Shown here: one piece after another, positions 7,927 through 42,100 of the stretch | Layout of the letters: each line of letters starts with the position of its first letter | Position numbering within the stretch: position 1 is the stretch's first letter | Assembly: GCF_000737315.1 (NCBI RefSeq) | Contig: NZ_JMCB01000007.1 | Span: 62,001 to 126,000 of the forward strand | Reading direction: 5' to 3' | DNA length: 64,000 bases | Source of the DNA: Hyalangium minutum | GTDB taxonomy: Bacteria; Myxococcota; Myxococcia; Myxococcales; Myxococcaceae | Translations under genes and position numbers: made by a program | Notes under the pieces: model-generated | Databases searched by the model: none | What the model saw: the letters and a program-made list of their open reading frames with translations, nothing else | What the model was told of the DNA's origin: nothing

Positions 7927-9012
<1,086 letters not shown>

Positions 9013-9041
9013 GCCTGAGCCCGTTCCGCTGAAGGAAGTGA

Positions 9042-9082
9042 CAGGGGCTGCTCGCCGCGAGGTGGGCAGCCCCTGGTTTTTT
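9042..9082 (+). terminator. Rho-independent terminator of recA
   Basis: CAGGGGCTGC/GCAGCCCCTG stem extended by wobble pairs around a GCGA loop, followed by GTTTTTT. Confidence 0.85.
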
Positions 9083-9179
9083 CCCAGGCTGGGACGTGGA
9101 ACACCCCTCCGTACGGGTGGCCTCCTGGTACGGTGCCAGGAGCCTTGGGAGGAACGGATACGTGAGGGGTGTGCGCTGG

Positions 9180-9528
9180 ATGTGGCTGTGTCTGCTGCCG
9201 CTGGTGGCCCTGGGCGGTACTGGAGAGACTCCTCGGACCGAGCAGAAGCCGCAGCCGGTGAAGTTCAACTACCTATAAGGAGTCCGGCTGTAATCCGGTG
9301 AAAGAGCTGAAGTGCCTCTGCGTGGGGGACCCTGGCCCTGCGGCGGCAGCGCTCGAAGAGATTGGCTTGGAGCGGAGCGTGGTCCAGACGAGCGGATCGC
9401 CGTGCATCAAGGGGGACTTCGATTCTGGGGGGCAGCCAAACAGGGAGGCGACGGCGCGTGGCTGGATCAGTGCACCGCAAGAATGCGGCCCTGCCCATCA
9501 ACGGCATACTCTGCTCCCGCATCCATGA
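9180..9528 (+). pseudogene. Frameshifted, probably 3'-truncated secreted Cys-containing protein
   Basis: MWLCLLPLVALGG...VKFNY stops at 9276-9278; the frame starting at 9274 continues YKESGCNPVKELKCLC...CIKGDFD. Confidence 0.5.
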
Positions 9529-9910
9529 TGGTGGAGTCGTCAAGGCCACAGCGGGCGAGGATGGGCGAGAACTGGATGAAGAAGAGGTCGTCCGTGGCCC
9601 GGAGAATGGAGATGTCATAGGTCTCCCAGCGGGAGAGGCACCTGGCGACAGGTGGATTCTCCCCTTTGAGACTTCTGCCCGGTGGCAGGAAGTCGTTCAT
9701 GGCCACCGCGAGCGCCCGGGTCGCGGCTCCTTCCGTGCGGACGCTGCCGTCGTACGAATCCGGGAACCGCACCGGCTCGGACAGCGCGGTGGGCACCCTG
9801 ACGGCCTGCTCGTATTTGTAATATCCAAAATACGAGCAGTGGGTCATGAAGAGGGAACAGCAGACAAGGAGCGCGGTGGGCCGAGCCTTGGGGGTGTGCT
9901 TACGCGTCAT
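9467..9910 (-). CDS. Hypothetical lipoprotein-like protein
   Basis: ATGA overlap with the upstream gene's stop; hydrophobic stretch ending in Cys (LFMTHC); C-terminal DAGAEYAVDGQGRIL. Confidence 0.7.
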   Translation of the reverse strand: MTRKHTPKARPTALLVCCSLFMTHCSYFGYYKYEQAVRVPTALSEPVRFPDSYDGSVRTEGAATRALAVAMNDFLPPGRSLKGENPPVARCLSRWETYDISILRATDDLFFIQFSPILARCGLDDSTIMDAGAEYAVDGQGRILAVH

Positions 9911-10481
9911 GGTATCCATTCCTCCCCCTCAAACAGGTGAACGTCTCCGTCGTCCTCGGCTTTGCCAATGGGAAACCATTGGCCCTCCCTGAGTGCAGAG
10001 ACTACCCGCGTTGCATTGTTGTAGTCGTAAGCCATGCAGGACCCTGTTCTGCCCCGGAAGAAGACCATGAGCTGGCGATCCCATACCTGTCCCGTCACAG
10101 GGTCCGCGAACCGGACGGGGAACCAGTGGGCTCTGACGCTGGTGTCTCTTCGGGAGAATGCGCGGGGGTAGGGATGCGTATGGGCGCCACCGAGTCGGAG
10201 AGGTAGCTGAGGAAGAACCCGCCATCTTGATGCGAGAAATAATGTAGCGCGCAGTACTCGAAGCCGTACGCGCCGCTGGAGGCACCGGCCTGACTCGTCA
10301 TCAATTCGCATGCGCTCGTGGCCAGGTTCTCCAGCGTGCGAAAGGGACCGGCCAGAGGGCCGTATACCTCCAAGCGCCCATCCGGAAGCCTGTGTACCCT
10401 CACGTTCGGATTGGAGGCGCCGCATCCCAACATCGCACTCAGCACCCACAGTGCTCTTGTTCTGTACATCCTCGCAAACAT
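9907..10481 (-). pseudogene. Frameshifted lipoprotein with JAB/MPN-like (DUF4329-like) HTH-P motif
   Basis: N-part MFARMY...MLGC...FEYCALHY...FFLSYLSD and C-part LGGAHTHPYPRAFSRRD...EEWIP lie in different frames, joined near 10194. Confidence 0.62.
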
Positions 10482-10572
10482 GCCGTCCCCCAATGTTCGT
10501 CACGGTGCCCGAGGTGAGTGCCGAGAGAGCATGAAGGCCCCTCCTGTGGGCAGGCTCCTGCCTGGACGGACG

Positions 10573-11352
10573 TTACCTCCCGAGCCCCCGGAGGATGGCG
10601 AGTTCGACGGGGGAATAGGCTCCATCATCGCGATGGAGCTGGAGCGGTTGGGCGGGATGGAGCGGTGGCTGGGCCATGAAGCGCGGCTGGGTGCCGCGGT
10701 GTGGCTGAGCCGCGTGGACCAGGAAGGGATGGCAGAGGAAGACCGTGCCAGCTTCACCCTGGGCGAGCGCGACGGGACGGCTCGCTGTCGTGTCGAGCCT
10801 CTGCGCCATCTCGATAAATGACAAGCCCGCATCGCCCTCCGGTTCGAGGAGCCGGGCCACATCCAGGTGGGAGCCGACTCGGAGGCGCGTCGGCGCGTCG
10901 TCCTGGCCCACGTCCGAGAACAGGAAGAGCATCAGCAGGGCACGGCCTCGCGAGGCTACATTCACCCGCCAGGAGAAGAACGAGTTCGGGTCTTCTCCCG
11001 GGAAGCTGGCGTCGATGTGCCACCCGTCATCTCCTGGAGCATCCGGGCTCGGGAAGCGGATGGGGAACGTGCCGACATCAGCGCGAGGCAACCAGCGCCC
11101 CGGTCCCACCAGCTGATCGAAGGCCGCATGAAGCCGAGGGGTATTCACCGCGCGGCGGAACGGCTCCTGTCCCAGGTAGCCCAGGCGGACGACGGCTTGA
11201 GTCCACGTGGCCGGATTGCCCGGGTCGCATCCCGTGCCGCGCCAGAGGAACTCACGGCATTCGTCCGCCAACTCTCGAGGGAAGGCGTGCTCGAGGCGGA
11301 TGTAGCCCTGTTCGATGAACTGATCGATCTCCGCAGGTGAGAGTTCCGCCAT
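10573..11352 (-). CDS. Phytanoyl-CoA dioxygenase (PhyH) family 2OG-Fe(II) oxygenase
   Basis: GWHIDAS (HxD), APTRLRVGSH, HPFLVHAA distal His. Confidence 0.85.
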   Translation of the reverse strand: MAELSPAEIDQFIEQGYIRLEHAFPRELADECREFLWRGTGCDPGNPATWTQAVVRLGYLGQEPFRRAVNTPRLHAAFDQLVGPGRWLPRADVGTFPIRFPSPDAPGDDGWHIDASFPGEDPNSFFSWRVNVASRGRALLMLFLFSDVGQDDAPTRLRVGSHLDVARLLEPEGDAGLSFIEMAQRLDTTASRPVALAQGEAGTVFLCHPFLVHAAQPHRGTQPRFMAQPPLHPAQPLQLHRDDGAYSPVELAILRGLGR

Positions 11353-11541
11353 GGCGTGCACCCTAGTCATTCAGTTCCTCCGCTGACGACAAGCAACACT
11401 CCTTGTGACGTTCCTCCACCGCGAATCTCAGGCGCGCTGCGTCATGAGCTCTTTGAAGGATGGTTGCCCGAGCCGCGGAGATCCACCGTAGACTTCGCGC
11501 CCGCCGCAGGCCCGCAGGCCCGGCTTATTTGGAGGGGTCCT

Positions 11542-13659
11542 TTGTCCCAGAAACTGCACCGTCGCACCATCCTGCAGTCCATCGTCGCGGTCGCGGCGAC
11601 GACTGCGTTCGGATGCAGCGAAGAAGAGACGACCGAGCAGCAGGCAGCGCAGTCTCGCGCCTATTTCCCTCAGTCCGTGGCCTCCGGTGATCCGCGCCCC
11701 GACAGCGTGGTGCTGTGGACGCGCGCCGTGGATGAGGAGCATGGCGGAGACGTCACCCTGTCGCTCGAGGTCTCCACCGAGGAGAGCTTCGGCACGCTGA
11801 TCGCCAACCCCAAGGGTCTCCAGGCGCAGGTCGCGCACGACAACGCCCTCAAGGTGAAGGTGACGAACCTGTCGCCGCGCACCACCTACTACTACCGCTT
11901 TGTCTACGAGCACGACGGCGAGCGCTTCGTCTCCCCCGTGGGCCGCACCAAGACCGCCCCCGCGCCGGGTGACGCTGTCCCCGTGAAGTTCGTCGTCGGC
12001 AACTGCCAGGACTACGTCGGCCGCTACTACAACGCATGGCAGCGCTTGCTGCAGCTGAACGCGGACGTGGATGCCATCATCTTCCTCGGCGACTACATCT
12101 ACGAGACCACCGGCGACCCGGCCTTCCAGTCCTCCAACACCACGCGCGGCGTCACCTTCAGCAAGCCCGAGGAGGCGCTCGTCCAGAAGAACGGCGTCTT
12201 CCAGTACTACGCCGCTCAGTCGCTCTCCAACTACCGCGACATCTACAAGACCCTGCGCACGGACCCCCTCATCCAGAAGGTCCACGAGCGCTACCCCTTC
12301 ATCAACGTCTGGGACGACCACGAGTTCTCGGATGACTGCTGGGGCTCGAACGCCACCTACGAGGACGGCCGCCGCTCCGAGAAGCAGGATGACCGCCGCC
12401 GCAACGCCGAGCAGGCCTTCTTCGAGTTCCTGCCCATCGACACCGCGGGCACCGCCGGCGAGGGCTCCATCAACGTGGACTCCGAGCCCAAGTACCCGGA
12501 CACCCGCATCTACCGGGACTTCGAGTTCGGCAAGCACGTGAAGCTCATCGTCACCGACTACCGTACCTACCGACCCGACCACCTCATCCCCGAGGACGGC
12601 TATCCGGGCACCGTGGTCATGGACGAGGCGGTACTGACGGCGATCGGCGCGGCTCCGGCCTTCGCGAGCGACTTGTTCGCGTACGTGGACGTGGATGCCG
12701 CGGAGCTGGCCGCTGTGAAGGGAGCCCTCTCGCAGGCGTATGTGGCCCAAGCCATGAAGGCCGGGCTGACTCAGGCGGAGGCCACGGCCAAGGCAGGCAC
12801 CTGGGTGAAGGGCAAGCTCGCGCTCGCCTACGTCAACCAGACCCTGGCCGCCCTCGGCCAGGCGCCCATCTCCGCCGCGGGCAAGCCGCGCGGTCTGGCC
12901 TACGTCCATATGGGCAAGGTGGATCTCTTCAACATTCGCGGCTCGCGCTACGTGGTGGTGAAGGACACCTTCGATCTCTACGCGGGGTATCGCTACCTCT
13001 CCTCCGGGAAGGCCAGCGAGAACGTGTGGGGCGCCACCCAGGAGGACTGGTTCAATCAGCAGGTGCAGGCCACGAACACCTGGAAGGTGGTCGTCAGCTC
13101 CGTGTCCTTCACCTCGCTGGTGTGGGACCTGCGCCAGAAGGCGGACATCCCTGATTCGACGCTGCGCCAGCGCTTCTACTTCAACGTGGATCAGTGGGAT
13201 GGTTTCCCCACCAAGCGCAAGGAGCTGCTGAGCACCCTGAAGGCCAAGAACGTCAACGCGCTGGTGCTGTCCGGCGACATCCACGCCTCGTACGCGTCGG
13301 TGGAGGAGGGCATCCCCATGTTGACCGGTCCGGCCATCTCCTCCGGCACGGTGCAGGAACTGGCCGGCAATGCCGTGCTCGGCGCTGGCTACTACTCGGG
13401 CAGCGCCATCTACAAGTACGTGGTCGCCCAACTGGATGCCACCCTGAAGGCGGGCAACGACAAGCTCGTCTTCTCCAACTCGACGCAGCACGGCTTCCTC
13501 ATGGTGGAGGTGCAGGCGGATCAGGCCGTGGCCACCTACCACCTGATCCCCAGCAGCGAGATCGACAAGGACTACTCGCAGCGGACGCCCGACGAGCTGC
13601 AGCGGAAGTTCACCACCCAGTCCCTCCGCGTCCAGAACGGCGCCATTACCGCCGCGTAG
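11542..13659 (+). CDS. phoD: Alkaline phosphatase D family protein, Tat-exported lipoprotein
   Basis: TTG start after GGAGG; HRRTILQ twin-Arg; TAFGC lipobox; SVASGDP, LGDYIYE, WDDHE, DQWDGF, SGDIH. Confidence 0.9.
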   Translation: MSQKLHRRTILQSIVAVAATTAFGCSEEETTEQQAAQSRAYFPQSVASGDPRPDSVVLWTRAVDEEHGGDVTLSLEVSTEESFGTLIANPKGLQAQVAHDNALKVKVTNLSPRTTYYYRFVYEHDGERFVSPVGRTKTAPAPGDAVPVKFVVGNCQDYVGRYYNAWQRLLQLNADVDAIIFLGDYIYETTGDPAFQSSNTTRGVTFSKPEEALVQKNGVFQYYAAQSLSNYRDIYKTLRTDPLIQKVHERYPFINVWDDHEFSDDCWGSNATYEDGRRSEKQDDRRRNAEQAFFEFLPIDTAGTAGEGSINVDSEPKYPDTRIYRDFEFGKHVKLIVTDYRTYRPDHLIPEDGYPGTVVMDEAVLTAIGAAPAFASDLFAYVDVDAAELAAVKGALSQAYVAQAMKAGLTQAEATAKAGTWVKGKLALAYVNQTLAALGQAPISAAGKPRGLAYVHMGKVDLFNIRGSRYVVVKDTFDLYAGYRYLSSGKASENVWGATQEDWFNQQVQATNTWKVVVSSVSFTSLVWDLRQKADIPDSTLRQRFYFNVDQWDGFPTKRKELLSTLKAKNVNALVLSGDIHASYASVEEGIPMLTGPAISSGTVQELAGNAVLGAGYYSGSAIYKYVVAQLDATLKAGNDKLVFSNSTQHGFLMVEVQADQAVATYHLIPSSEIDKDYSQRTPDELQRKFTTQSLRVQNGAITAA

Positions 13660-13703: not shown

Positions 13704-14249
13704 ATGAGCCCTCCGGAAGTGAAGCTCGTCCCCGCGTTGCCCGAGCACCTCGATGCTTGGATCGCCATGCGGAACGGCCCCACCTCGCGGCGCCTGTTGC
13801 CCTTGGACGACAACAACCGCGAGTCCCTGCTCAAGCGCTTGCGCGAGGCGAGCAGCGATGTGACCGATCCCCACGCCAAGGGCTTCCGGTGGATGGTGGA
13901 GGTGGAAGGGCGCATTGCGGGCACGGTCGCCGCGCGCGAGTTCTCCCGGTTCCACGGCCGCGTCGAGGTGGGCTACATGCTCGCCGAGGAGTTCATCGGC
14001 CGAGGCATCGGTACCCGCGCGGTGGCGATGATGCTGGAGCGCCTGTTCTCCACTCCCGAACTCCATCGCATCTGGCTCACCACCACGCCGGAGAACCTCG
14101 CCTCGCAGGCCGTGGCGCGCAAGCTGGGGTTCGTCCTGGAGGGGCTGTGGCGTGGGCACTGCATCGTCCAGGGACAGCGTAGGGATCAACAGATTTGGGG
14201 CCTCTTGCGGCCCGAGTGGGAAGCGCGGCACGGAGTGAAAGATCGATGA
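13704..14249 (+). CDS. GNAT N-acetyltransferase (RimJ/RimL-like)
   Basis: VEVGYMLAEEFIGRGIGTRAV, NLASQAVARKLGFVLEG. Confidence 0.88.
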   Translation: MSPPEVKLVPALPEHLDAWIAMRNGPTSRRLLPLDDNNRESLLKRLREASSDVTDPHAKGFRWMVEVEGRIAGTVAAREFSRFHGRVEVGYMLAEEFIGRGIGTRAVAMMLERLFSTPELHRIWLTTTPENLASQAVARKLGFVLEGLWRGHCIVQGQRRDQQIWGLLRPEWEARHGVKDR

Positions 14250-17200
14250 GACATCTGCTGAAGGGAACCCTCCTGGCGCTGTGTGCGCTGGTCTTCTCCT
14301 TGAGCGTCGCGAGCTGTCACGGCGGCGAGTCCCCTGCGAATCCCTGTGAAGGCGTGGTCTGTGGCGCTGGGCACTGCATGGCCAGCGACGGACGGCCCGC
14401 CTGTATGTGTGATGCGGGCTACCACGCGGACGGGCTCACCTGCGTCAAGGACAACGAGCCTCCAAAGAACCCCTGTGAGCCGAATCCGTGCCTCCAGCCA
14501 GGCCGCCGGATCTGCCTCGTCGTGGCAGACCGGGCCGTCTGTGGATGCGATCCGGGGACTGTGGAAGGACCGGGAGGCACGTGCGTCGTCCCCAACCCGT
14601 GCGATCCCAATCCCTGCACCCTGCCGAACAAGACGGACTGCAGTGTGTCCAATGGCCAGGCTGTCTGCTCGTGCGTGAGCGGCTATGAGCCGGACGGGGA
14701 GGAGTGCAAGCCGGAGCAGACCGTCACCTGCACGGGCCAGCATACGGAGGGAGACTCGTTCGAGCCCGATGAGTGCCCGGCGCTCGCGCGCGCCGTGGAC
14801 GCGGGTGGGACGCAGAACGAGGCGCACACGCTGAGCCCCTTGGGTGACGAGGACTGGCTGAAGCTCACCGCCTCGGCGGGGCACATCTACGAGGTGGTGG
14901 CCACGAGTGCGGCGAGCGAGCGGCTGGATCTGGACTTGTATGCCGCAGACGGCACCACGGTGCTGGCCTCGGATCACAGCGGACAGACTCCCGTGCAGCT
15001 CGTCCACAAGGCCACGGTCGCCGGTGAGCTGTACTTCCGGATCCGCTCCTCCGTGAGCGGCGATGCGGGCGCCTACACCCTGTCCATCGTGGACCTCGGC
15101 GTGGATGACTTCGCGGATGAGCCGGCGCTTGCCACCGTCCTGACGACTCCGAGCGGAACTCCGGTGGCGGGAGCGCTGCAGTTCGACGGAGATCGGGACG
15201 TGGTGAAGCTCCCGCTCACGGCGGGCCACAGCTACCGCTTCGAGGCGGCCTGGAGCGCCACGAGCACGGCCTCGCTGAAGCTCGAGCTCATCGCGCCGGA
15301 TCGCACGACGGTGGTGGTCTCCAGCCAGCAGGTGGCGCCGCAGGGGCTCACGCGCATCACCAGCTCGGGGGACTACTATCTGCGGGTCCAGGAGGCCACG
15401 GGGAAGGTGCGTGCGGCCTACTCCTTTACCGTGACGGACCTGGGCGTGGATGACCACGGGGATGGGGCCTCGGAGTCTTCTCCCGTGATCATCGGTGCGC
15501 CGCCCGCGGATGGCGGCTTCGAGCGCCCCGATGACGTGGACGTCCTCTCGTTCCAGGCGCAGGCGGGCCACATCTATGCCTTCACCTGCAACCCGGCCGG
15601 AGGTGTCTCGGACTGCCACGTGAGTCTCTCCAACGCGGCGGGCACCGTGCTGGCCACCGACAACAACGGGGGCACGGGCTTCATCGTCTATGAGTACACC
15701 CAGGCGGGGACGTATTTCTTCCGGCTCTCTTCGGGCGGCGTGGGCAGCTACACGTACCGGCTGGAGGACCTGGGCTTCGATGACTACGGCGACACTCTCG
15801 CCACGGCCACGGCGGTCACTCCGGCGGCCACGCCCACCAGCGCCCGGCTGGAGGTGCCCGGGGATGTGGACTTCCTGAAGCTCGAGGTCCAGGCCGACTT
15901 CGTCTATGCGTTCACCTGCGCCTCGACGGCCTTCACGTGCACCCTGGAGCTGCAGGACGGCGCGGGCACGGTGCTGGCCTCCGGCTCGGCGAGCTCGGAC
16001 TCCGTGCGGCTCAGCCACACCTTCCTCTCCGCGGGTACGGCCTACCTGCGCATCTCCGCGAGTTCAGCGGCCGCCATGGGCTCGTACACGTGGCAGGTGG
16101 AGTCCCAGTACGTGGATGACCACGGCAACACGATCGATACGGCCACGGCCATCACCCCGGGGGCGGCGTCCAGCGCTGGCCAGCTGGAGGTCGCGGGCGA
16201 CGTGGATGTCTTCCGTTTCTCCGCGACCGCGAGCCACATCTACCGGTTCACGTGCAGCAGCAGCGCGTTGGACTGCGATGCCGAGCTGCTCGACGCCAGC
16301 GGCTCCGTCATCGTGAGCGCCACCGGCCCCGAGACGACGGCTGTCATCACCTACGAGTTCAACTCGGGCGGCACGTACTACTTCCGGGTGCAGACCGACT
16401 CCGGGGCGGCCGGGGGATATACGTACTCGCTGGAGGAGCTCGGCGTGGACGACCACGGAGATACCTCCGGCACCGCGACGGCTCTCACCGTACCGATGTC
16501 TGGCTCGGGCCAACTGGAGACCCCGGGCGATGTGGACGTGTTCTCCTTCAGCGGCGCCGCCGACGAGGTCTTCGAGTTCACCTGCACGGGGACCTCGGTC
16601 GACTGCAATGTGCTGTTGGTGAACTCCAGCGGAGGCACGGTGGCGTCCGACACGTCCTCGAGCGCCAACGCGCGAATCCTCTACCGGCTGCCTCAGGCGG
16701 GGACCTGGTTCCTGCACGTGAAGAGCACTCCGGTAGCCACCGGGAGCTACGGCTATCAGCTCGTGTCCCTGGGGACCGATGAGCACGGGGATACACCCGC
16801 GACTTCGACCCCGGTCGTCGTGGACGCTCCCGTGGCGGGCGGCCGGATCGACACGTCTGCGGATGTCGACGTGTTCTCCTTCGAGGCGCTGGCAAACCAC
16901 ATCTATGAGATCACCTGCACCAGCGCCAACTTGAGCTGCGATCTGCAGCTGATGACCGCAGCGGGGACGGTGCTCGCCTCCAACAGCGGCGCTAACGCGC
17001 GGGTCGTCTACGAGGTGGGCACTGCAGGGACCTACTACTTCCGGATCGCCAGCGTCTCCAGCACAGCGGGGACGTACTCGTATCGCGTGGTGGATCTGGG
17101 GATGGATGACCACGGCGATGACCTGGCGAGTGCCACGGCCATCACTGCCGGAGCGCCTGCGGCCAACGGCACCCTGGAGATCTCGGGGGATGTGGACGTG

Positions 17201-20200
17201 TTCTCGTTCTCCGCCGCGGCCAACCACCTCTACGAGTTCACCTGCACGGGCACCACCATCGATTGCAACGTGGAACTGGTGCACGCGACCGGCACGGTGC
17301 TGGCCTCGGATACCTCTTCCAACACCCTGGCGAGGGTTCGCCTCCAGCTCACGGCGGCTGGTACGTACTCCCTGCGTGTGGTGGGTGGCAGCTCGGGCAA
17401 CCCGACGGGCACCTACAGCTACCAGCTGCTGGACCTTGGGCTGGATGACCATGGCAACACGCCCGATACCTCCACGGGTGTGACGCCGGGTGCGCCTCCG
17501 GCGAACGGGACGATCGACAACGCCAGCGATGTGGATGTCTTCGGCTTCGATGCCGTGGCCGGCCACATCTACCAGTTCACCTGCTCGGCGAGCTTCGACT
17601 GCAATGTGCTGCTCACGACCGCGTCCGGGACGGTGGTGGCCTCGGACACCGGGCCGTCGTCGGACGCGCTCGTCGTATTCGAGTTCTCCGCTTCGGGAAC
17701 CTTCTACTTCAAGGTCTCGAGCGGAAACGGCGTCCTGGGGCCCTATACCTATGAGCTCCGGGACCTCGGGGTAGATGACCACGGCGACGTGATGGCCGCC
17801 GCTACTCCGATTGCCCCCTCCACCACCACCAGCACGGGCCGGGTGGAGACGTTCGGTGACGTGGACTTCTTCTCGTTCTCCGGAGCCGCGAGCACCACCT
17901 ACGAGTTCAGCTGCACCACCACCGCCATCGACTGCAACGTGGTGTTCTATGATTCCAGCGGGAACGTTCTGCAGTCCGACACGGGCGCCAGCACCAATGC
18001 CCGGGTGACCTATGTGGTGCGCTCGGCTGGCACCTTCTATGTGAAGGTCTCCAGCGGGACAGCGACGATCGGTGGCTACTCGTACCAGCTGCAGAGCCTG
18101 GGAGAGGACGACCACGGCAACACGATCAACGATGCCACGCCCGTGTCTCCGTCGAGCTCCTACAGCAACGCGACGATCGAGGTTTCCACGGACGTGGACG
18201 TGTTCTCGTTCACCGCTGTGGCCGGGCACATCTACGAGATCGAGTGCACCAGCTCCGCCATCGACTGCGACGTGGTGCTGATGGACTCGGCGGGGACGGT
18301 GATTGCCTCCGACACCGGTCGTTCCACCTCCGCTGCGGTGCGCGTGGAGCTGAACACGGCAGGCACCTACTACTTCCGCATCCAGCCGGGCACGGCGTCC
18401 ATTGGCAGCTACTCGTATCGGGTGAGGGATCTGGGAGTGGACGACTTCGGGGACACGATCGCCACGGCCGCGCCCATCTCGCCCATGGCGAGCAGCGCCC
18501 CCGGCCAGATCGAGACCTCGGGGGATTTTGACGTGTTCTCCTTCAGCGCCACCGCGGGTCACATCTACCGGTTCACCTGCACGGGGGCCGCGGGCGACTG
18601 CGACCTCGATCTCGTGGACGAGGCCGGGACGCTGCTGGCCCGGGACAACGCCCCCGCTTCGTCCGCGACGCTCCTCTATGAGATCGGCGCCGCAGGCACC
18701 TACTACGTGAAGCTGTTCTTCGGGAACGCTTCGACCACCGTCATCGGCGGGTACAGCTACCGGCTCGAGGACCTCGGGGTGGATGACCATGGGGACACCG
18801 CCGCCACGGCGACGCCCATCACCGTGTCCACCACCGCCAGCACGGGCCGTGTGGAGACGCTCGGTGACGTGGACTTCTTCTCGTTCTCCGGAGCCGCGAA
18901 CACCACCTACGAGTTCAGCTGCAACACCACCGCCATCGACTGCAACGTGGTGCTCTATGACTCCAGCGGGAACGTGCTGCTGTCGGACACCGGCCTCAGC
19001 CCCAACGCGCGGGTGACGTATCTGGCGCGCACGGCGGCCACCTTCTTCCTCAGAGTCTCCAGCGGGACCGCGACGATCGGCGACTACACGTACCAGCTGA
19101 GCAACCTGGGCACGGATGACCACGGCAACACGAACGAAAGCGCCACGCCTGTTACGCCGTCCACCACCTACAGCAATGCCAGGATCAACGCCTCCACAGA
19201 TGTGGACGTGTTCTCGTTCACCGCTGTGGCTGGCCACATCTACGAGGTCGAGTGCTCCACCTCGGCCTTTGACTGCAACCTGGTGCTGATGGACGCAACG
19301 GGGGCGACGATTGCCTCCGATCTGGGCACTGGCGCCATCGCTCGGGTGCGCGTGGAGCTGAATACGGCGGGCACCTACTACTTCCGCATCCAGCCGGGCA
19401 CGGCGGCCTTCGGAAACTACACGTACCGGGTGCAGGACCTGGGTTTGGATGACCACGGAGATACGCTCGCCACGGCCACGCTCCTCACGCCCATGACGAG
19501 CACCGCCACTGGCGCGATTGAGGCCTCCGGCGATGTCGACGTCTTCGCCTTCAGCGCCACGGCAGGCGGCATCTACGAGTTCTCCTGCACCGGAACGGGC
19601 GACTGCGACCTCGATCTGGTCGACGGCGCTGGAGCCCTCCTGGTCCGGGACAACACCTCCTCCACCTCCGCCAAGGTCGTCTACGAGTTCGACACCGCCG
19701 GCACCTACTACGTGCGCCTGCGCTACGGGACTGGCTCGACCACGGTGACCGGGAACTACACCTACCAGCTCAAGGATCTCGGCGTGGATGACCACGGCGA
19801 CACGCCCGCCACGGCGACGCCCATCACCCCGTCCACCACCACCAGTACCGGCAAGATCGAGACGCTGGGAGACCTGGACCACTTCTCGTTCTCGGGGGCG
19901 GTCAACACCACCTATGAGTTCAGCTGCACCGGCAGCGGCATCGACTGCAACGTGGTGCTCTATGACTCCAGCGGCACGGTGGTGCAGTCCGACACCGGTA
20001 CCAGCACCACCGCTCGGGTGACGTACCTGGTGCGGGTCGCCGGGACCTTCTACGTGAGGGTCTACAGCGGCACGGCGGCGATCGGTGCCTATACCTACCA
20101 ACTGAAGAACCTGGGCACGGACGACCACGGCAACACGCTGTCCGATGCCACGCCCGTCACGCCGTCCACCTCCTTCTCCAGCGCTCGGATCGACGCGGCG

Positions 20201-22444
20201 GGTGATGTGGATGTGTTCTCCTTCACGGCGGTGGCCGGTCACATCTACGAGGTGGCGTGCAGCACCTCGGCCTTCGACTGTGACCTGGTGCTGATGGATG
20301 CGGCGGGGACGACGATTGCCTCCGATACAGGGAGCTCCACCTCCGCGTCGGTGCGCGTGGAGCTGAACACTGCGGGCACGTATTACTTCCGCATCCAGCC
20401 AGGGGGTTCGACCTTCGGGAACTACACATACCGGGTTCAGGATCTGGGCGTGGATGACCACGGAGACACGCTGGCCACGGCGACGCCCATCGCCGCGTCC
20501 ACCACGTACACCCCTGCGAAGTTCGAAGTGGCAGGGGACGTGGACTGGTTCTCGTTCACGGCCGCTGCGGGCCACATCTACGAGTTCCATTGCAGCAGCG
20601 GGGGGAGCTCGGACTGCGACGTGTACCTGACAGATGCGGCTGGAGTGACGGTGGTGGCGGACACTGCATCGACCCTGTCGGCACGGGTGCGGTGGGAGTT
20701 CAACACGGGCGGCACGTACTACGTGCGTGCGTTGGTGGCGACGGGGAGCTGGAGCACCTCCAACAGCTACTCGTACCGGCTGGAGGACCAGGGCGTGGAT
20801 GACCACGGGGACACCCTGGCCACAGCGACACCCATCGCCGCGTCCACCACGTACACCCCTGCGAAGTTCGAAGTGGCGGGGGACGTGGACTGGTTCTCGT
20901 TCACGGCGGTGGCAGGCCACGTCTACGAGTTCCATTGCAGCAGCGCGGGGAACGTGGACTGCAACGTGTACCTGACGGACGCGGCCGGGACGACCATCGT
21001 GGCGGACACTGCGTCGACCCTATCGGCGCGGGTGCGGTGGGAGTTCAACACGGGCGGCACGTACTACGTGCGCGCGGTGGTGGCGGATTGGAACATCTCC
21101 AACGGCTACTCGTACCGGCTGGAGGACCAGGGCGTGGATGACCATGGAGACACCCTGGCCACGGCGACGCCCATCGCAGCGTCCACCACGTATACCGGCG
21201 CGAAGTTCGAGGTGGCGGGGGACGTGGACTGGTTCTCGTTCACGGCGGTGGCAGGCCACATCTACGAGTTCCACTGCAGCAGCGCGGGGAACGTGGACTG
21301 CAACGTGTACCTGACGGACGCGGCCGGGACGACCATCGTGGCGGACACTGCGTCGACCCTATCGGCGCGGGTGCGGTGGGAGTTCAACACGGGCGGCACG
21401 TACTACGTGCGCGCGGTGGTGGCGGATTGGAACATCTCCAACAGCTACTCGTACCGGCTGGAGGACCTGGGACTGGATGACCACGGGGACACCTTGGCCT
21501 CGGCGACGCCCATCGTGCCTTCCACTGCGTACACCAGCGCGAAGATTGACGTGTCTGGGGACGTGGACTGGTTCTCGTTCACGGCCGCTGTGGGCCACAT
21601 CTACGAGTTCCACTGCAGCAGCGCGGGGAACATCGACTGCGACGTGTACCTGACCGACGCGGCGGGGGCGACCATCGTGGCGGACACTACGTCGACCCTG
21701 TCGGCGCGCGTGCGGTGGGAGTTCAACACGGGCGGCACGTACTACCTGCGAGTGGTGTCGGGGAACTGGAACCTCTCCAACGGCTACTCGTACCGGCTGG
21801 AAGACATGGGCGTGGATGACCACGGGGACACCCTGGCCACGGCGACGCCTGTCGTGCCTTCCACCACGGCCACCAGCGCGTCCCTTGAGACCTCCGGGGA
21901 TGTGGACTGGTTCTCCTTCTCGGCAGCCGCAGGCCAGGCCTTCGACTTCTTCTGCAACACCAGCAACTTCGACTGTGACTTGTACCTGTATGACGCGTCC
22001 GGCACCCTGCTCACACAGGACACGTCCAGCGCGACGAGCGCGCGGGTGACGCCCAGATTCGCCGTCGCCGGCACCTACTTCGTGAAGGTCGTCGGCGGGG
22101 TTGGCGCGTACTCCTACCGCTTGAATGATCGCGGCGTGGACCAGCACTCGGACACGTTCACGGGGGCCACCGTGCTCACCCTGGGCACGGCCACCGCGGG
22201 CAACATCGAGATCGCGACGGACATCGACTTCTTCGCTGTCACGCTGGAGGCTGGCACCCCGTACACGGTGACGCCGACGGGCATCACCCTCACGCTCACC
22301 GTGTACGCCCCGAACCAGACGACGACGCTCTACACCGGCGCGGGGCCTGGAACCTTCACCGCCAACGCGGGAGCGGGCACCTATTACGTCCGCGTGGCGG
22401 GAGCCTCTTCGAGCACCGGTGCTTATACGGTGAGGATCCAGTAG
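14246..22444 (+). CDS. Giant (2732 aa) lipoprotein: 3 EGF-like modules plus 23 tandem PPC-like beta-sandwich domains; putative adhesin
   Basis: Lipobox VASC (Cys24); Cys-rich N-terminal modules; repeats DDHG(D/N)T...GD(V/F)DxFSF...(C-x4-6-C)...AGTYY; no catalytic domain recognised. Confidence 0.85.
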   Translation: MRHLLKGTLLALCALVFSLSVASCHGGESPANPCEGVVCGAGHCMASDGRPACMCDAGYHADGLTCVKDNEPPKNPCEPNPCLQPGRRICLVVADRAVCGCDPGTVEGPGGTCVVPNPCDPNPCTLPNKTDCSVSNGQAVCSCVSGYEPDGEECKPEQTVTCTGQHTEGDSFEPDECPALARAVDAGGTQNEAHTLSPLGDEDWLKLTASAGHIYEVVATSAASERLDLDLYAADGTTVLASDHSGQTPVQLVHKATVAGELYFRIRSSVSGDAGAYTLSIVDLGVDDFADEPALATVLTTPSGTPVAGALQFDGDRDVVKLPLTAGHSYRFEAAWSATSTASLKLELIAPDRTTVVVSSQQVAPQGLTRITSSGDYYLRVQEATGKVRAAYSFTVTDLGVDDHGDGASESSPVIIGAPPADGGFERPDDVDVLSFQAQAGHIYAFTCNPAGGVSDCHVSLSNAAGTVLATDNNGGTGFIVYEYTQAGTYFFRLSSGGVGSYTYRLEDLGFDDYGDTLATATAVTPAATPTSARLEVPGDVDFLKLEVQADFVYAFTCASTAFTCTLELQDGAGTVLASGSASSDSVRLSHTFLSAGTAYLRISASSAAAMGSYTWQVESQYVDDHGNTIDTATAITPGAASSAGQLEVAGDVDVFRFSATASHIYRFTCSSSALDCDAELLDASGSVIVSATGPETTAVITYEFNSGGTYYFRVQTDSGAAGGYTYSLEELGVDDHGDTSGTATALTVPMSGSGQLETPGDVDVFSFSGAADEVFEFTCTGTSVDCNVLLVNSSGGTVASDTSSSANARILYRLPQAGTWFLHVKSTPVATGSYGYQLVSLGTDEHGDTPATSTPVVVDAPVAGGRIDTSADVDVFSFEALANHIYEITCTSANLSCDLQLMTAAGTVLASNSGANARVVYEVGTAGTYYFRIASVSSTAGTYSYRVVDLGMDDHGDDLASATAITAGAPAANGTLEISGDVDVFSFSAAANHLYEFTCTGTTIDCNVELVHATGTVLASDTSSNTLARVRLQLTAAGTYSLRVVGGSSGNPTGTYSYQLLDLGLDDHGNTPDTSTGVTPGAPPANGTIDNASDVDVFGFDAVAGHIYQFTCSASFDCNVLLTTASGTVVASDTGPSSDALVVFEFSASGTFYFKVSSGNGVLGPYTYELRDLGVDDHGDVMAAATPIAPSTTTSTGRVETFGDVDFFSFSGAASTTYEFSCTTTAIDCNVVFYDSSGNVLQSDTGASTNARVTYVVRSAGTFYVKVSSGTATIGGYSYQLQSLGEDDHGNTINDATPVSPSSSYSNATIEVSTDVDVFSFTAVAGHIYEIECTSSAIDCDVVLMDSAGTVIASDTGRSTSAAVRVELNTAGTYYFRIQPGTASIGSYSYRVRDLGVDDFGDTIATAAPISPMASSAPGQIETSGDFDVFSFSATAGHIYRFTCTGAAGDCDLDLVDEAGTLLARDNAPASSATLLYEIGAAGTYYVKLFFGNASTTVIGGYSYRLEDLGVDDHGDTAATATPITVSTTASTGRVETLGDVDFFSFSGAANTTYEFSCNTTAIDCNVVLYDSSGNVLLSDTGLSPNARVTYLARTAATFFLRVSSGTATIGDYTYQLSNLGTDDHGNTNESATPVTPSTTYSNARINASTDVDVFSFTAVAGHIYEVECSTSAFDCNLVLMDATGATIASDLGTGAIARVRVELNTAGTYYFRIQPGTAAFGNYTYRVQDLGLDDHGDTLATATLLTPMTSTATGAIEASGDVDVFAFSATAGGIYEFSCTGTGDCDLDLVDGAGALLVRDNTSSTSAKVVYEFDTAGTYYVRLRYGTGSTTVTGNYTYQLKDLGVDDHGDTPATATPITPSTTTSTGKIETLGDLDHFSFSGAVNTTYEFSCTGSGIDCNVVLYDSSGTVVQSDTGTSTTARVTYLVRVAGTFYVRVYSGTAAIGAYTYQLKNLGTDDHGNTLSDATPVTPSTSFSSARIDAAGDVDVFSFTAVAGHIYEVACSTSAFDCDLVLMDAAGTTIASDTGSSTSASVRVELNTAGTYYFRIQPGGSTFGNYTYRVQDLGVDDHGDTLATATPIAASTTYTPAKFEVAGDVDWFSFTAAAGHIYEFHCSSGGSSDCDVYLTDAAGVTVVADTASTLSARVRWEFNTGGTYYVRALVATGSWSTSNSYSYRLEDQGVDDHGDTLATATPIAASTTYTPAKFEVAGDVDWFSFTAVAGHVYEFHCSSAGNVDCNVYLTDAAGTTIVADTASTLSARVRWEFNTGGTYYVRAVVADWNISNGYSYRLEDQGVDDHGDTLATATPIAASTTYTGAKFEVAGDVDWFSFTAVAGHIYEFHCSSAGNVDCNVYLTDAAGTTIVADTASTLSARVRWEFNTGGTYYVRAVVADWNISNSYSYRLEDLGLDDHGDTLASATPIVPSTAYTSAKIDVSGDVDWFSFTAAVGHIYEFHCSSAGNIDCDVYLTDAAGATIVADTTSTLSARVRWEFNTGGTYYLRVVSGNWNLSNGYSYRLEDMGVDDHGDTLATATPVVPSTTATSASLETSGDVDWFSFSAAAGQAFDFFCNTSNFDCDLYLYDASGTLLTQDTSSATSARVTPRFAVAGTYFVKVVGGVGAYSYRLNDRGVDQHSDTFTGATVLTLGTATAGNIEIATDIDFFAVTLEAGTPYTVTPTGITLTLTVYAPNQTTTLYTGAGPGTFTANAGAGTYYVRVAGASSSTGAYTVRIQ
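17774..20452 (+). repeat. Higher-order intragenic repeat: three-domain unit A-B-C with 1005-1008 bp period
   Basis: DD(H/F)G codons at 17774/18782/19787 (A), 18107/19115/20120 (B), 18440/19448 (C). Confidence 0.85.
20453..21814 (+). repeat. Four near-identical tandem domain copies (339-345 bp)
   Basis: Unit starts 20453, 20798, 21137, 21476; long identical DNA tracts such as gtgcggtgggagttcaacacgggcggcacgtactac. Confidence 0.9.
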
Positions 22445-35682: not shown

Positions 35683-37920
35683 ATGGCACGAACGCAGAAG
35701 CCTGCCTTTTCGCTCGGGGTGGGGAGTCACGCGGCGGACACCCTCGTGGTGGTCCGCTTCACCGGCCGGGAGGCGCTGTCATGCCCGTACGACTTCCAGC
35801 TCGAGTTCTTCGCCCGGGATGGGCAGGTGCTCGAGCTGGCGGAGCTCTCGAACACCCAGGTGCTGCTGACGATTCGGCTTGGGGAGGTGCCGCTGCGCCA
35901 CGTGCACGGGTGGGTGCGGCAGGCCGAGGCGCTGGGCCGCATCGGAGGCCGCTGGCACTACCGAGTGCGGGTGAGGCCAAAGCTCGAGCGTCTGCGCCAG
36001 ACCCAGGACAGCCGTATCTTTCAGGAGCTGACGGTGCCCGACATCGTCAAGGCCCTGCTGGGGGAGTGGCGCGTGGAGCACCGCTTCCTGCTGAGCCGCT
36101 CCTACGCCGTGCGCGAGTACTGCGTGCAATACCGTGAGTCGGACTTCGCCTTCATCTCCCGGCTGCTGGAGGAGGAGGGCATCTTCTACTTCTTCGAGCA
36201 CGCCGAAGATGGCCACACGCTGGTGCTGGGGGACGTTTCGAATGCCCACGTGGCGTTGCCCGGAGGGCCGGTCCTGCCCCTGCGGCCGGAAGATGGGCGT
36301 GCCCACGACGAGGAGTTCATCTCCCGGCTGGAGCGGGTGCACCGGCTGCGGCCGGGAGAGGTGATGCTGCGCGACTTCGACTTCAAGAAGCCGGGGTTGG
36401 ACCTCTCCACGCGGAGCTCCAGTGTGGAGGGCCTGCGAGTGCTGGAACTGTACGACTACCCGGGAGCGTACGTGGCGCCGGGGGAGGGCCAGGGCCTGGT
36501 GCGCACGCGCATGGAGGAGAAGGCCCAGGGGGCACGGACGTACACGGGGCGCAGCGTGTGCCCGCGGCTGGCGCCGGGCTACCTCTTCGAAGCGGAGAGC
36601 CCCGGGGAGGGCACCTGGGCCGGGTTCTACCTCGTGGAAGAGGTGGTGCACTCCGGCCAGCAGCCCGACACGCTGGGGGCCCCCGAGACGCTGGGCGAGG
36701 TGTATCACAACGACTTTCGAGCCCTGCCCAAGGGAGTGCCCTTCCGGCCCATGCGGGTGACGCCTCGGCCTCGCATCCCCGGGATACAGACGGCGACGGT
36801 GAGCGGCCCCGCGAGCGAGGAGATCCACACGGACGAGTACGGCCGCATCAAGGTGCAGTTCCACTGGGACCGGGAGGGGCAGCACAACGAGCGCTCCTCG
36901 TGCTGGATGCGGGTGGGCCAGGGCTGGGGCGGGCTCGGCTGGGGCGCCGTGTACCTGCCCCGCATCGGCCAGGAGGTGGTGGTTCGCTTCCTGGAGGGCG
37001 ATCCCGACCGGCCGCTGATCGCGGGCACCGTCTACAACGGAGGCAACGCGGCGCCGTACGGGCTGCCGGGCGACAAGACGAAGACCACGCTCAAGAGTTC
37101 CTCCAGCCTGGGCGGCGCGGGTTTCAACGAGGTGCGGAGCGAGGACTCAGCGGGCAAGGAGGAGATCTTCACCCACGCCCAGAAGGACGAGTCCCTCATC
37201 ACGGAGAACGACAAGAGCCAGGAGGTGCGCGGGTACGAGGACCTCCTGGTGAAGAAGGACCGCAGCCTCTGTGTGGAGTGGAACCAGGAGCTCACCGTGG
37301 AGCTCAACGACAGCAACCTCATCGAAGGCAACCAGAGGCTGCGGGTGAGTGGGAATCGCTCCACCACGACTCACGAGAACCATGGGGAGTCCGTGCAGGG
37401 CAACCAGGGCATCACCGTGGGCAGCAACTTCACGTCGATGGTCAATCAGGCCACCACGGAGGGGGTGGGGGCCGCCAAGGCTCTGACGATTGGAGGGGGC
37501 TACTCCATCAATGTGGGCCTGGGGATGGCCGAGACCACCGGAGGCCTCAAGGCCGTCGAAGTGGGCGCCGCCATGATCGAACTGGTGGGCATCCGTCGCG
37601 AGGAGAGCGTGGGGCAGAACAAGCAGACCCTGGTGGGCCTGGACTTCGAGTCGCAGTGCGGCGGCGGAATGACGCAGGCGGCGGGCCAGTCGCTCCAGGA
37701 GAACGTGGGTGGCAAGACCTCCGTGAGCGCGAAGGAAGGTGCTGGCTGGCTGGCCAAGAAGTTCGTGCTGACGGCGGAGGACACCTTCACGCTCCTGGTG
37801 GGCGGCCAGCTGATCCTGAAGCTCGAGAAGTCTGGCGCGGTGACCTTCATGGGGAAGACCCTCACCATCGACAGCAAGGAGACGCAGTTCCGCGGCGGCA
37901 CGGTGCATTCGCGGCCCTGA
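35683..37920 (+). CDS. vgrG: Type VI secretion spike protein VgrG (copy 1)
   Basis: FTGREALS, SRIFQ, REYCVQYRESDFAFISRLLEEEGIFYFFEH, IHTDEYGRIKVQFHWDR, PRIGQEVVVRFLEGDPDRP, gp5-type beta repeats. Confidence 0.95.
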   Translation: MARTQKPAFSLGVGSHAADTLVVVRFTGREALSCPYDFQLEFFARDGQVLELAELSNTQVLLTIRLGEVPLRHVHGWVRQAEALGRIGGRWHYRVRVRPKLERLRQTQDSRIFQELTVPDIVKALLGEWRVEHRFLLSRSYAVREYCVQYRESDFAFISRLLEEEGIFYFFEHAEDGHTLVLGDVSNAHVALPGGPVLPLRPEDGRAHDEEFISRLERVHRLRPGEVMLRDFDFKKPGLDLSTRSSSVEGLRVLELYDYPGAYVAPGEGQGLVRTRMEEKAQGARTYTGRSVCPRLAPGYLFEAESPGEGTWAGFYLVEEVVHSGQQPDTLGAPETLGEVYHNDFRALPKGVPFRPMRVTPRPRIPGIQTATVSGPASEEIHTDEYGRIKVQFHWDREGQHNERSSCWMRVGQGWGGLGWGAVYLPRIGQEVVVRFLEGDPDRPLIAGTVYNGGNAAPYGLPGDKTKTTLKSSSSLGGAGFNEVRSEDSAGKEEIFTHAQKDESLITENDKSQEVRGYEDLLVKKDRSLCVEWNQELTVELNDSNLIEGNQRLRVSGNRSTTTHENHGESVQGNQGITVGSNFTSMVNQATTEGVGAAKALTIGGGYSINVGLGMAETTGGLKAVEVGAAMIELVGIRREESVGQNKQTLVGLDFESQCGGGMTQAAGQSLQENVGGKTSVSAKEGAGWLAKKFVLTAEDTFTLLVGGQLILKLEKSGAVTFMGKTLTIDSKETQFRGGTVHSRP

Positions 37921-37957
37921 GCCCGCGCGTGGGTGCGCTCAGCGCTCTTACCGCTCG

Positions 37958-37969
37958 GGTGGTACAGCC
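37958..37969 (+). promoter_or_regulatory. Motif GGTGGTACAGCC upstream of vgrG-2
   Basis: Identical to 35629-35640. Confidence 0.4.
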
Positions 37970-38038
37970 AAGGTCCAGCCCCCGCCCTACAGTGTTTTCT
38001 ACCCGACGTTGCCACATGGATTCAGAGGCGGACTGTTT

Positions 38039-40303: not shown

Positions 40304-40329
40304 CAAGCCTTTCACCCAGGAGCCACACC

Positions 40330-40794
40330 ATGGCCGCACGCCGTTCCTCACTCGGGATTGCTCCCGCCACCCCCAGTTCGTCTCTTCCTTCGGCCCTCCT
40401 GGGCTGGATCACCGGCTATGAGCCGGGGGAGGGGCCTCTCGTGGACTATCCTGGCAACCCGTCCGGGCCCCTGCGGGCCCGGTTGCTCGTCGACACCGGC
40501 GCACAGGCATTGCGCTCGGCGGCCGCGTCTCGCTGCCCCGTCGCGCTGCTCTTCGAGAATGGAGACCCCGCGCTTCCGCTCGTTGCCGGGCTGGTGTGGC
40601 CGCCCGGTGAGCGTGAGGCGCAGGTAGATGGAGAGCGGATCGTCCTGACGGGGGAGAAGGAGATCGAGCTGCGCTGTGGCGCCGCATCCATTTCCCTGAC
40701 CCGGAACGGGAAGGTCGTGATTCGAGGGGCCTACGTCGAAACTCGGGCGAAGGGCACGAACCGGATCAAGGGCGGAGCGGTCCAGATCAACTGA
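40330..40794 (+). CDS. DUF6484-like protein; resembles a minimal gp5/gpV spike (OB-fold plus beta-strand tail)
   Basis: VALLFENGDPALPLVAGLV and ELRCGAASISLTRNGKVVIRG...IKGGAVQIN align by eye with VgrG segments. Confidence 0.75.
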   Translation: MAARRSSLGIAPATPSSSLPSALLGWITGYEPGEGPLVDYPGNPSGPLRARLLVDTGAQALRSAAASRCPVALLFENGDPALPLVAGLVWPPGEREAQVDGERIVLTGEKEIELRCGAASISLTRNGKVVIRGAYVETRAKGTNRIKGGAVQIN

Positions 40795-40813
40795 AAGGCG
40801 AGCGGCTGAAGCC

Positions 40814-42070: not shown

Positions 42071-42100
42071 GCTTCGCTCCTTGCAATCGCTCTGCTCTCC

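Follow-up and report, generated by a model that had tools for sequence, protein, structure and literature searches.

What is the role of a lipoprotein built from 23 copies of a domain that the literature describes as an accessory of proteases, but which itself carries no protease? The question is raised by a gene of Hyalangium minutum at positions 14246–22444 (forward strand) of the stretch of DNA analysed here (64,000 nucleotides; contig NZ_JMCB01000007.1, positions 62,001 to 126,000; hereafter the window). The original prediction, made from the sequence alone, had read the product as a 2732-aa non-catalytic lipoprotein made of 23 domains of the pre-peptidase C-terminal (PPC) type, and the open reading frame (ORF), the lipobox, the Pfam matches and the structural models agree with that description. 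Judged by its sequence, the protein is an expanded member of an annotated, functionally uncharacterised class of poly-PPC proteins. The explanation of its role that we favour, with middling confidence, is that it forms a ∼281-kDa, lipid-anchored, non-enzymatic, cation-stiffened fibre outside the cytoplasm, with an adhesive or structural function.

Gene, lipoprotein signal and domain content

The gene is a single ORF whose longest possible start is a TTG at 14195 and whose stop codon occupies 22442–22444 (+). We place the start at the ATG at 14246, which has a GGAG 5′ of it and gives a product of 2,732 aa; the same start site and the same signal peptide are present in six orthologs. The 8.2-kb frame is uninterrupted and its third-position GC (GC3) of 0.88 is like that of the neighbouring genes, in a window whose G+C ranges from 62 to 72% along the profile (∼67% overall). 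Promoter and terminator scans returned nothing usable in this 67% GC DNA. Public gene models begin later. The entry for the H. minutum protein itself (P0001, 2,627 aa) has residue 106, an internal GTG, as its start and has thereby lost the signal peptide, and the RefSeq entry for Hyalangium gracile is likewise shortened, beginning at about residue 45 (window 14246–14560; P0001, P0004). These late starts drop the lipoprotein signal and one or two of the EGF-like modules described below. The orthologs are named ‘pre-peptidase C-terminal domain-containing protein’ by NCBI.

The N-terminus, MRHLLKGTLLALCALVFSLSVAS followed by Cys24, reads as a canonical lipoprotein signal peptide, as had been predicted. 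Basic residues (R2 and K6) precede a hydrophobic core (LLALCALVFSLSV) and a V-A-S-C lipobox whose cysteine falls within positions 15–35, in keeping with the PROSITE PS51257 rule. Cys24, the predicted site of acylation, is invariant across the six orthologs, and lipoboxes are likewise found in further family members. In Myxococcus xanthus, Lys at position +2 is typical of inner-membrane lipoproteins, and Ala at +7 is required for sorting of FibA to the matrix (PMC3222651). Here, His occupies +2, where the orthologs have Pro or Ser, and Pro occupies +7, so the M. xanthus rule points only to the outer membrane. A conserved C-x-G-G-E-(E/S)-P stands right after the lipid-modified Cys (window 14315–14338, aa 24–31), with G26, E28 and P30 invariant in six orthologs; it matches neither the +2 Lys nor the +7 Ala rule and could be a sorting cue. 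The mature protein has a calculated mass of 281.5 kDa and a pI of 4.16, with 314 Asp and Glu against 108 Lys and Arg, and contains 60 Cys. The low pI and the many Cys would be fitting for an oxidising compartment beyond the cytoplasm.

The three Cys-rich modules that had been placed after the lipobox are present with six Cys each, and all 18 of these Cys (18/18) are invariant in the six orthologs. Their Pfam matches are sub-threshold (EGF_3 at 22.6 bits against a cut-off of 28.5, cEGF at 20.0 bits, and also Pvs28), and AlphaFold2 (AF2) models them as paired β-hairpins with a predicted local distance difference test score (pLDDT) of ∼75–84. The Cys pattern, these matches and the hairpin pairs together suggest that the modules are EGF-like.

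The remainder of the chain comprises 23 units of 101–116 aa (R1–R23), bounded by 22 motifs of the form D(D/E/Q)(H/F)(G/A/S)(D/N). Pfam PPC (PF04151) reaches 357.8 bits (cut-off 25.9, E=5e-109) with 21 significant stretches, and the family is recognised in 21 of the 23 domains. R22 (37.7 bits) and R23 (33.1 bits) each pass singly; R1 (19.2 bits) and R2 (13.5 bits) are sub-threshold and are covered by the fold match of an N-terminal model (see below). Aligning the 20 Cys-bearing repeats, we found D1, G4, D29, D31, C47, C54, G63, T87 and Y102 to be invariant, and D2, H3, V30, F33, F35, Y43 and Y104 to be nearly so. The acidic motif originally described at the domain starts is well supported by the invariant D1, G4, D29 and D31, while of the proposed GDxDxF signature only the two Asp are invariant. 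A Cys pair does occur in most domains, as had been claimed (20 of 23, R3–R22, and not in R1, R2 or R23), with a spacing of x5–x8 instead of x4–6. An R23-type domain ends every complete family protein inspected in full (P0002–P0005 and P0007–P0010). The features of the gene are collected in Table 1.

Table 1. Segments of the H. minutum poly-PPC lipoprotein gene, with window coordinates and the evidence for each
Feature	Position	Strand	Evidence
Predicted signal peptide and lipobox (aa 1–24; VAS, then lipid-modified Cys24)	14246..14317	+	Read from sequence, PS51257-type rule
Three probable EGF-like 6-Cys modules (aa 34–66, 77–113, 119–154) and Cys162–Cys177 pair into R1	14318..14755	+	Cys invariance, Pfam, AF2
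R1, R2: divergent PPC-like domains, no Cys pair, membrane-proximal	14756..15448	+	Sub-threshold Pfam, model match to 5iku
R3–R9: seven Cys-pair PPC domains	15449..17773	+	Pfam PPC, same-index orthologs
R10–R17: three-domain-block repeat (R10,11,12)(R13,14,15)(R16,17)	17774..20452	+	Identity matrix, DNA comparison, AF2
R18–R21: recently amplified ‘GDVDWF’ repeats, lineage-specific distal block	20453..21814	+	TRF, alignment, ortholog comparison
R22: last PPC domain with Cys pair, site of best spurious T9SS-tail match	21815..22138	+	Pfam PPC, TIGR04183
R23: C-terminal Cys-less PPC ‘cap’ and stop codon	22139..22444	+	Pfam PPC

Pfam and NCBIfam, run on the complete protein and on its non-repeat parts, found no peptidase or other catalytic family. 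The label ‘non-catalytic’ is therefore appropriate, and the setting of PPC domains C-terminal to a secreted peptidase does not apply to this protein. Small scores for SCP2, Lipase_C, SatRNA_48 and DUF5008 were rejected, as none has an individually significant stretch and they are the product of summing over repeats. The Pfam scan also lacked the Big, HemolysinCabind and RTX families, and neither PA14 nor MYXO-CTERM was found by Pfam or NCBIfam. There is no C-terminal sorting domain: R23 is a plain PPC domain with no NCBIfam match, and the protein ends in ...GAYTVRIQ, in agreement with the absence of a sorting motif noted originally. We rejected a sorting domain of the type IX secretion system (T9SS; TIGR04183, 156 bits on the whole protein), for which all matches are internal, the best being 25.8 bits at aa 2574–2624 in R22, and none falls in the terminal R23. 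More widely, the T9SS models TIGR04183 and PF18962 cross-match PPC arrays (the poly-PPC protein P0029 reaches 367 bits with no individually significant stretch), and false ‘T9SS substrate’ annotations are likely to arise in this way.

Predicted fold and the junctions between domains

We modelled R10–R12 with AlphaFold2 from an alignment made up of the repeats of the protein itself. In this model (pLDDT 89.7; predicted template modelling score, pTM, 0.64) every repeat is an eight-strand β-sandwich, with the two Cys flanking one hairpin loop. Secondary structure assignment by DSSP shows a long terminal strand (residues 100–111) that abuts the DDHGD motif of the next unit. As this last strand is continuous with the following DDHGD, the model has no flexible linker between units. 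A Foldseek search of the PDB with R10–R12 ranked the Ca2+-bound s3a–s3b tandem of ColG (5iku) second (E=1.4e-8, 18% identity), after the CUB array of cubilin (3kq4_B, E=6.7e-9) and before other Ca2+-binding CUB arrays. When the N-terminal 410 residues, R1–R2 included, were modelled, the top PDB match was the tandem of ColG collagen-binding domains (CBDs; 5iku, E=8.7e-9). The models of adjoining domains bear out a β-sandwich of the PPC/CBD type, with 5iku as the closest bacterial structure, and the repeats are thus predicted to have the fold of the ColG and ColH CBDs. At the sequence level, a profile search of PDB sequences found ColH s3 at E ∼0.1, with GDVDVFSF aligned to SDQDYFYF and the alignment beginning after DDHGD.

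The CBDs of Hathewaya (Clostridium) histolytica (ColG s3a–s3b and ColH s3; 5iku and 3jqw) belong to the same Pfam family and have the same β-sandwich fold, and they share with the repeats an acidic N-terminal segment and a D-x-D on an early strand. In the collagenases, however, one or two CBDs lie C-terminal to a secreted M9 protease, whereas the H. minutum protein has 23 of them, is lipid-anchored and carries no enzyme; the repeats also contain an extra intradomain Cys pair and are only ∼15–18% identical to these CBDs. The ColG/ColH motif is of the E-x-E-x-N-D or EPND type, unlike DDHGD here. An EPND-type repeat of the giant poly-PPC protein P0025, used as a query toward mapping of the Ca2+ ligands, gave no match. 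The ColG and ColH CBDs chelate Ca2+ with their acidic N-terminal segment and early strand, and the invariant acidic residues of the repeats lie in the corresponding places.

The candidate metal ligands of the repeats (D1, D2, D5, D29 and D31) vary little or not at all, and the DxD aligns to the DQD of ColH in the weak match described above. In ColG, Ca2+ turns the s3a–s3b inter-domain linker from helix to strand and hyperstabilises the domains (PMC4356367). Invariance of D1, G4, D29 and D31, the absence of a linker in the model and the fold match to the Ca2+-bound ColG tandem support putative metal binding at the junctions, as does the strong acidity of the protein. Given the near-invariant His of DDHGD, the site may instead bind a transition metal.

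Repeat zones, relatives and genomic setting

Comparison of the repeats with each other and with those of the orthologs separates the array into zones. R2–R9 have same-index orthologs in three other species at 60–85% identity, against 37–55% to repeats of the same protein. Each of R3–R9 has its best ortholog match in the repeat of equal index (60–83%, against 41–55% within the protein), and R2 is among the repeats best conserved between species (80–85% to four orthologs), with a ratio of non-synonymous to synonymous substitution rates (dN/dS) of 0.21–0.28. R10–R17 are arranged in three-unit blocks, with 63–79% protein identity between corresponding units and ∼79% DNA identity. R18–R21 show the opposite pattern to the proximal repeats, their best match lying within the protein (81–96%) rather than in any ortholog repeat (65–72%). 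They are 77–95% identical in the multiple alignment of repeats, and Tandem Repeats Finder (TRF) reports the block at 20439–21849 with a period of 339 bp, 4.1 copies and 90% matches. R18–R21 are a recent, lineage-specific tandem amplification, and because the anchor is N-terminal, this fast-changing block would be at the membrane-distal end.

R19 and R20 (window 20798–21475) are 95.3% identical in DNA and share a 168-bp identical run, and as a result of this near-identity the copy number of R18–R21 could be off by one unit in a short-read assembly. The H. gracile ortholog contains one truncated 88-aa repeat, which may be an assembly collapse or a real deletion. Over residues 25–1176, dN/dS against two syntenic orthologs is 0.30–0.34 at 71–72% amino-acid identity, whereas the flanking RecA and Tex are 89–95% identical between loci; the gene is thus functional but fast-evolving. 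By analogy, copy-number change, distal homogenisation and fast evolution are typical of exposed adhesins, and suggest that the protein may be one.

The close relatives are found in H. gracile (71% identity), H. rubrum, H. versicolor (two paralogs) and several Myxococcaceae and Archangiaceae metagenome-assembled genomes (MAGs). The relatives in Archangium and Cystobacter are shorter, with a single EGF-like module and between one and three PPC domains, and the genome scan found no Myxococcus ortholog. All complete family members begin with a lipoprotein signal. The myxobacterial family of EGF-like and PPC lipoproteins spans 314–3,281 aa, with the H. minutum protein among the largest; only two members are larger, P0002, a jgi protein with 28 repeats, and a protein with 24 repeats from a Myxococcaceae MAG. 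Repeat numbers in the long forms are 12, 17, 23, 23, 24 and 28, the range of 12–28 referring to the full-length relatives P0002–P0005 and P0007. Two members (P0009 and P0010) appear by eye to add a lamin-tail-like segment and Cys-rich repeats to their EGF-like and PPC modules; their precomputed Pfam annotation lists only cEGF and PPC.

Proteins of this kind are widespread. We searched the repeat profile against 1.84 billion representative proteins. At E≤1e-3 it matches 24,383 of them, and at E≤1e-30 it still matches 1,796. Among the best matches are arrays of 53, 33, 29, 28, 26 and 25 repeats, in proteins that reach a length of 6,725 aa (P0025, 6,725 aa, with 53 repeats; P0095 with 33; P0044 with 29; P0054 with 28). 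In repeat type and in their DDHG(D/N)T...DxD motifs these giants agree with the H. minutum protein, and a lipoprotein-type signal stands at the start of many. The four that were inspected in full and the three that were Pfam-scanned (P0024, P0029 and P0054) have no peptidase, and one ends in a dockerin; no peptidase is listed for the close myxobacterial family members either. With many enzyme-free arrays among the profile matches, poly-PPC giants are common in sequence space. A literature search on tandem PPC proteins found only protease-attached PPC domains and the work on FibA and Protein C. The original statement that PPC domains normally accessorise proteases is therefore true of the literature but not of sequence space, and the rarity that it implied for this architecture has to be abandoned.

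The genes around the PPC gene are housekeeping genes (RecA, PhoD, GNAT, Tex and GST). The slot (RecA)-PhoD-GNAT-gene-Tex is shared with three relatives, P0002, P0003 and P0007, which are intact and 1,520–3,281 aa long, while the H. rubrum and H. versicolor copies are at other loci and are paralogs. The PPC gene begins within the stop codon of the GNAT (Acetyltransf_3) gene that lies upstream, the two codons overlapping in ATGA (14246–14249), an arrangement that suggests co-transcription, and the adjacency of the two genes is kept in four ortholog loci with gaps of 70–280 bp. We rejected GNAT as a functional partner, since it is cytoplasmic and its position most likely reflects mere conserved gene order. 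An S8 peptidase gene with ricin domains, two genes upstream in one ortholog locus (L004), was also rejected as a partner; it is absent from the window and from a further locus (L008), so there is no conserved enzyme partner.

Several other features of these loci were noted. The recA–phoD slot (window 9013–11355) is variable, holding the S8 peptidase gene in L004 and nothing in L008. Here it contains a PhyH-like dioxygenase gene (10573–11370, −) and small ORFs with lipoprotein-like N-termini (10095–10493 and 9467–9919, −), and its GC is slightly lower (0.644–0.651 in the 8001–12000 profile bins). The neighbours of the non-syntenic H. rubrum paralog (L001, 14390–19531) encode a large TPR protein, an AHH nuclease toxin and its Imm11 immunity protein. 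Further along the window, two tandem VgrG genes (35683–37920 and 37844–40303; Phage_GPD, Phage_base_V and Gp5_trimer_C domains) precede an ORF with no assigned function (40721–42070) and a DUF2169 gene (42071–43231). The region 35683–43231 has the look of an islet for a type VI secretion spike and its effector, unrelated to the PPC protein.

A candidate surface fibre and the alternatives

In the reading that we favour, an N-terminal lipid would tether this acidic, non-enzymatic protein to the outer membrane. From the anchor outwards would follow the EGF-like modules, a conserved stalk (R1–R9), the block-duplicated R10–R17, the amplifying R18–R21, R22 and the Cys-less cap R23. A predicted disulfide would pin one hairpin in 20 of the 23 repeats, and the three EGF-like modules would be disulfide-knotted. 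At each of the 22 junctions, the invariant DDHGD and the early-strand D-x-D would chelate a divalent cation (Ca2+ by homology), and the domains, locked together by this chelation, would form an extended fibre that resists proteases, a rod of perhaps ∼100 nm if each domain contributes ∼4 nm. The fibre would then most likely serve as a multivalent adhesin or as a structural tether to an insoluble polymer, be it the organism's own matrix, the spore coat, or prey or substratum material, with the repeat number tuning reach and avidity. Metal binding, rigidity, the outer-membrane or surface location and the adhesive or structural role are the parts of this scheme that we infer. A comparable principle operates in RTX adhesins, in which tandem β-sandwich domains stiffened by junctional Ca2+ project a binding tip from the cell (PMC7493085, PMC4083281). 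The likeness to RTX adhesin extenders (MpIBP/LapA-type BIg) and to cadherin or CUB arrays is one of analogy only, the shared element being the proposed Ca2+-stiffened β-sandwich junctions. The fold in these systems is BIg or cadherin and here it is PPC; RTX adhesins leave the cell by type I secretion, with C-terminal RTX repeats and an N-terminal plug that holds them, whereas the H. minutum protein has a Sec/lipoprotein signal.

Several observations weigh against this scheme. No solved Ca2+-binding CBD is more than weakly similar in sequence (E ∼0.1), and the Foldseek superposition on 5iku is poor, with a TM score of 0.28 and a root mean square deviation of 16.5 Å. The tandem CBDs of ColG lie side by side in the crystal and are not rod-like. 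The C-terminal segment of Grimontia collagenase, which includes a PPC domain, binds collagen with ethylene glycol tetraacetic acid (EGTA) present (PMC6168687), so Ca2+ is not needed by every PPC domain. The gene neighbourhood contains no secretion partner, usher or regulator, and none that is conserved. Finally, the +7 Ala matrix-export cue of M. xanthus is missing, and the default prediction is only the outer membrane, where the protein might face the periplasm.

The last two points lead to the main alternative, which we consider unlikely but serious: a component of the periplasmic envelope, anchored in the outer membrane's inner leaflet, that would extend along the periplasm as a spacer or scaffold, or buffer divalent cations there, and never be surface-exposed. 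Lipoproteins with no inner-membrane retention signal generally travel by the Lol route to the outer membrane and usually face the periplasm. Disulfides form in that compartment and the ∼200 net acidic residues would buffer cations; the export cue and any nearby export machinery are, as stated, lacking. A 23-domain chain, however, far exceeds the width of the periplasm, the lineage-specific distal amplification and the 12–28 copies are typical of exposed proteins, and the PPC domains studied so far act extracellularly (PMC4356367, PMC3236237). The joining of EGF-like and PPC modules to a lamin-tail-like segment and Cys-rich repeats in P0009 and P0010 also speaks against confinement to the periplasm. 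A rather less probable option, itself a variant of the favoured reading, is export followed by proteolytic release, with the poly-PPC chain or its fragments self-assembling as a shed precursor of matrix or spore coat. This is the example set by FibA (MXAN_6106), a lipoprotein of M. xanthus whose C-terminal two-PPC fragment, found in the matrix, is the spore-cuticula Protein C and is dominant in both cuticula and matrix (PMC3236237, PMC3222651). The two proteins are alike as myxobacterial PPC lipoproteins, being of the same domain family and bacterial group. They part in that FibA has an M4 metalloprotease, two PPC domains and the +7 Ala of matrix sorting, whereas the H. minutum protein has 23 PPC domains, EGF-like modules, a +7 Pro and no protease domain for self-processing; furthermore, with no Myxococcus ortholog in the genome scan, it cannot be a general cuticula component.

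In a second variant, an array of PPC domains could hold insoluble substrates, prey debris or secreted hydrolases at the surface as a capture scaffold for predation or feeding. The PPC/CBD domains of ColG, ColH and Grimontia collagenase do bind insoluble collagen (PMC4356367, PMC6168687), ColG s3b through an aromatic hot spot of Tyr970, Tyr994 and Tyr996 (PMC4356367), and the fold match to collagenase CBDs and the S8 peptidase with ricin lectin domains near the ortholog in L004 fit such a role. We nevertheless find it improbable, given that the S8 gene is missing from the window and from L008 and that no ligand is indicated by any analysis. Kin recognition, which the original prediction had listed among possible functions, found no support, and a polymorphic receptor acting by homotypic binding in the manner of TraA seems very improbable. 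The evidence for it is circumstantial (fast evolution, variable distal repeats and Cys-rich modules like those of TraA), while PA14 and a C-terminal tag, the marks of TraA and MYXO-CTERM proteins, are both missing, no TraB-like partner is encoded nearby, and the variation is in copy number and not in one variable recognition domain. We give least credence of all to an assembly artefact or a decaying repeat pseudogene. The identical run in R19/R20 and the truncated H. gracile repeat might suggest one, but for the gene as a whole this explanation is ruled out by the intact frame with its coding-type GC3, the three intact syntenic orthologs and a dN/dS of ∼0.3, and all structural Cys and Asp are invariant.

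A wider proposal, which we regard as doubtful, is that the EGF-like and PPC lipoproteins form an unrecognised, myxobacteria-specific class of lipid-anchored, cation-stiffened surface fibres, exported by an unknown route that is possibly cued by C-x-G-G-E-E-P and mediating cohesion between cells, of cells with the matrix or of spores through the amplifying distal repeats. If true, this class would be a third solution among diderm bacteria for an adhesin of ∼100 nm, beside the type I secreted RTX adhesins and the autotransporters. Of practical value in any case are the corrected gene model, which includes the lipoprotein signal absent from the public calls, and a candidate for work on adhesion, matrix or spore coat in Hyalangium-like myxobacteria. 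If the protein is surface-exposed, it would offer a tractable example both for the role of the thousands of enzyme-free poly-PPC proteins of genomes and metagenomes and for the transport of very large myxobacterial lipoproteins to the surface or matrix, and it would extend the Ca2+-junction principle of cadherins and RTX adhesins to the PPC fold.

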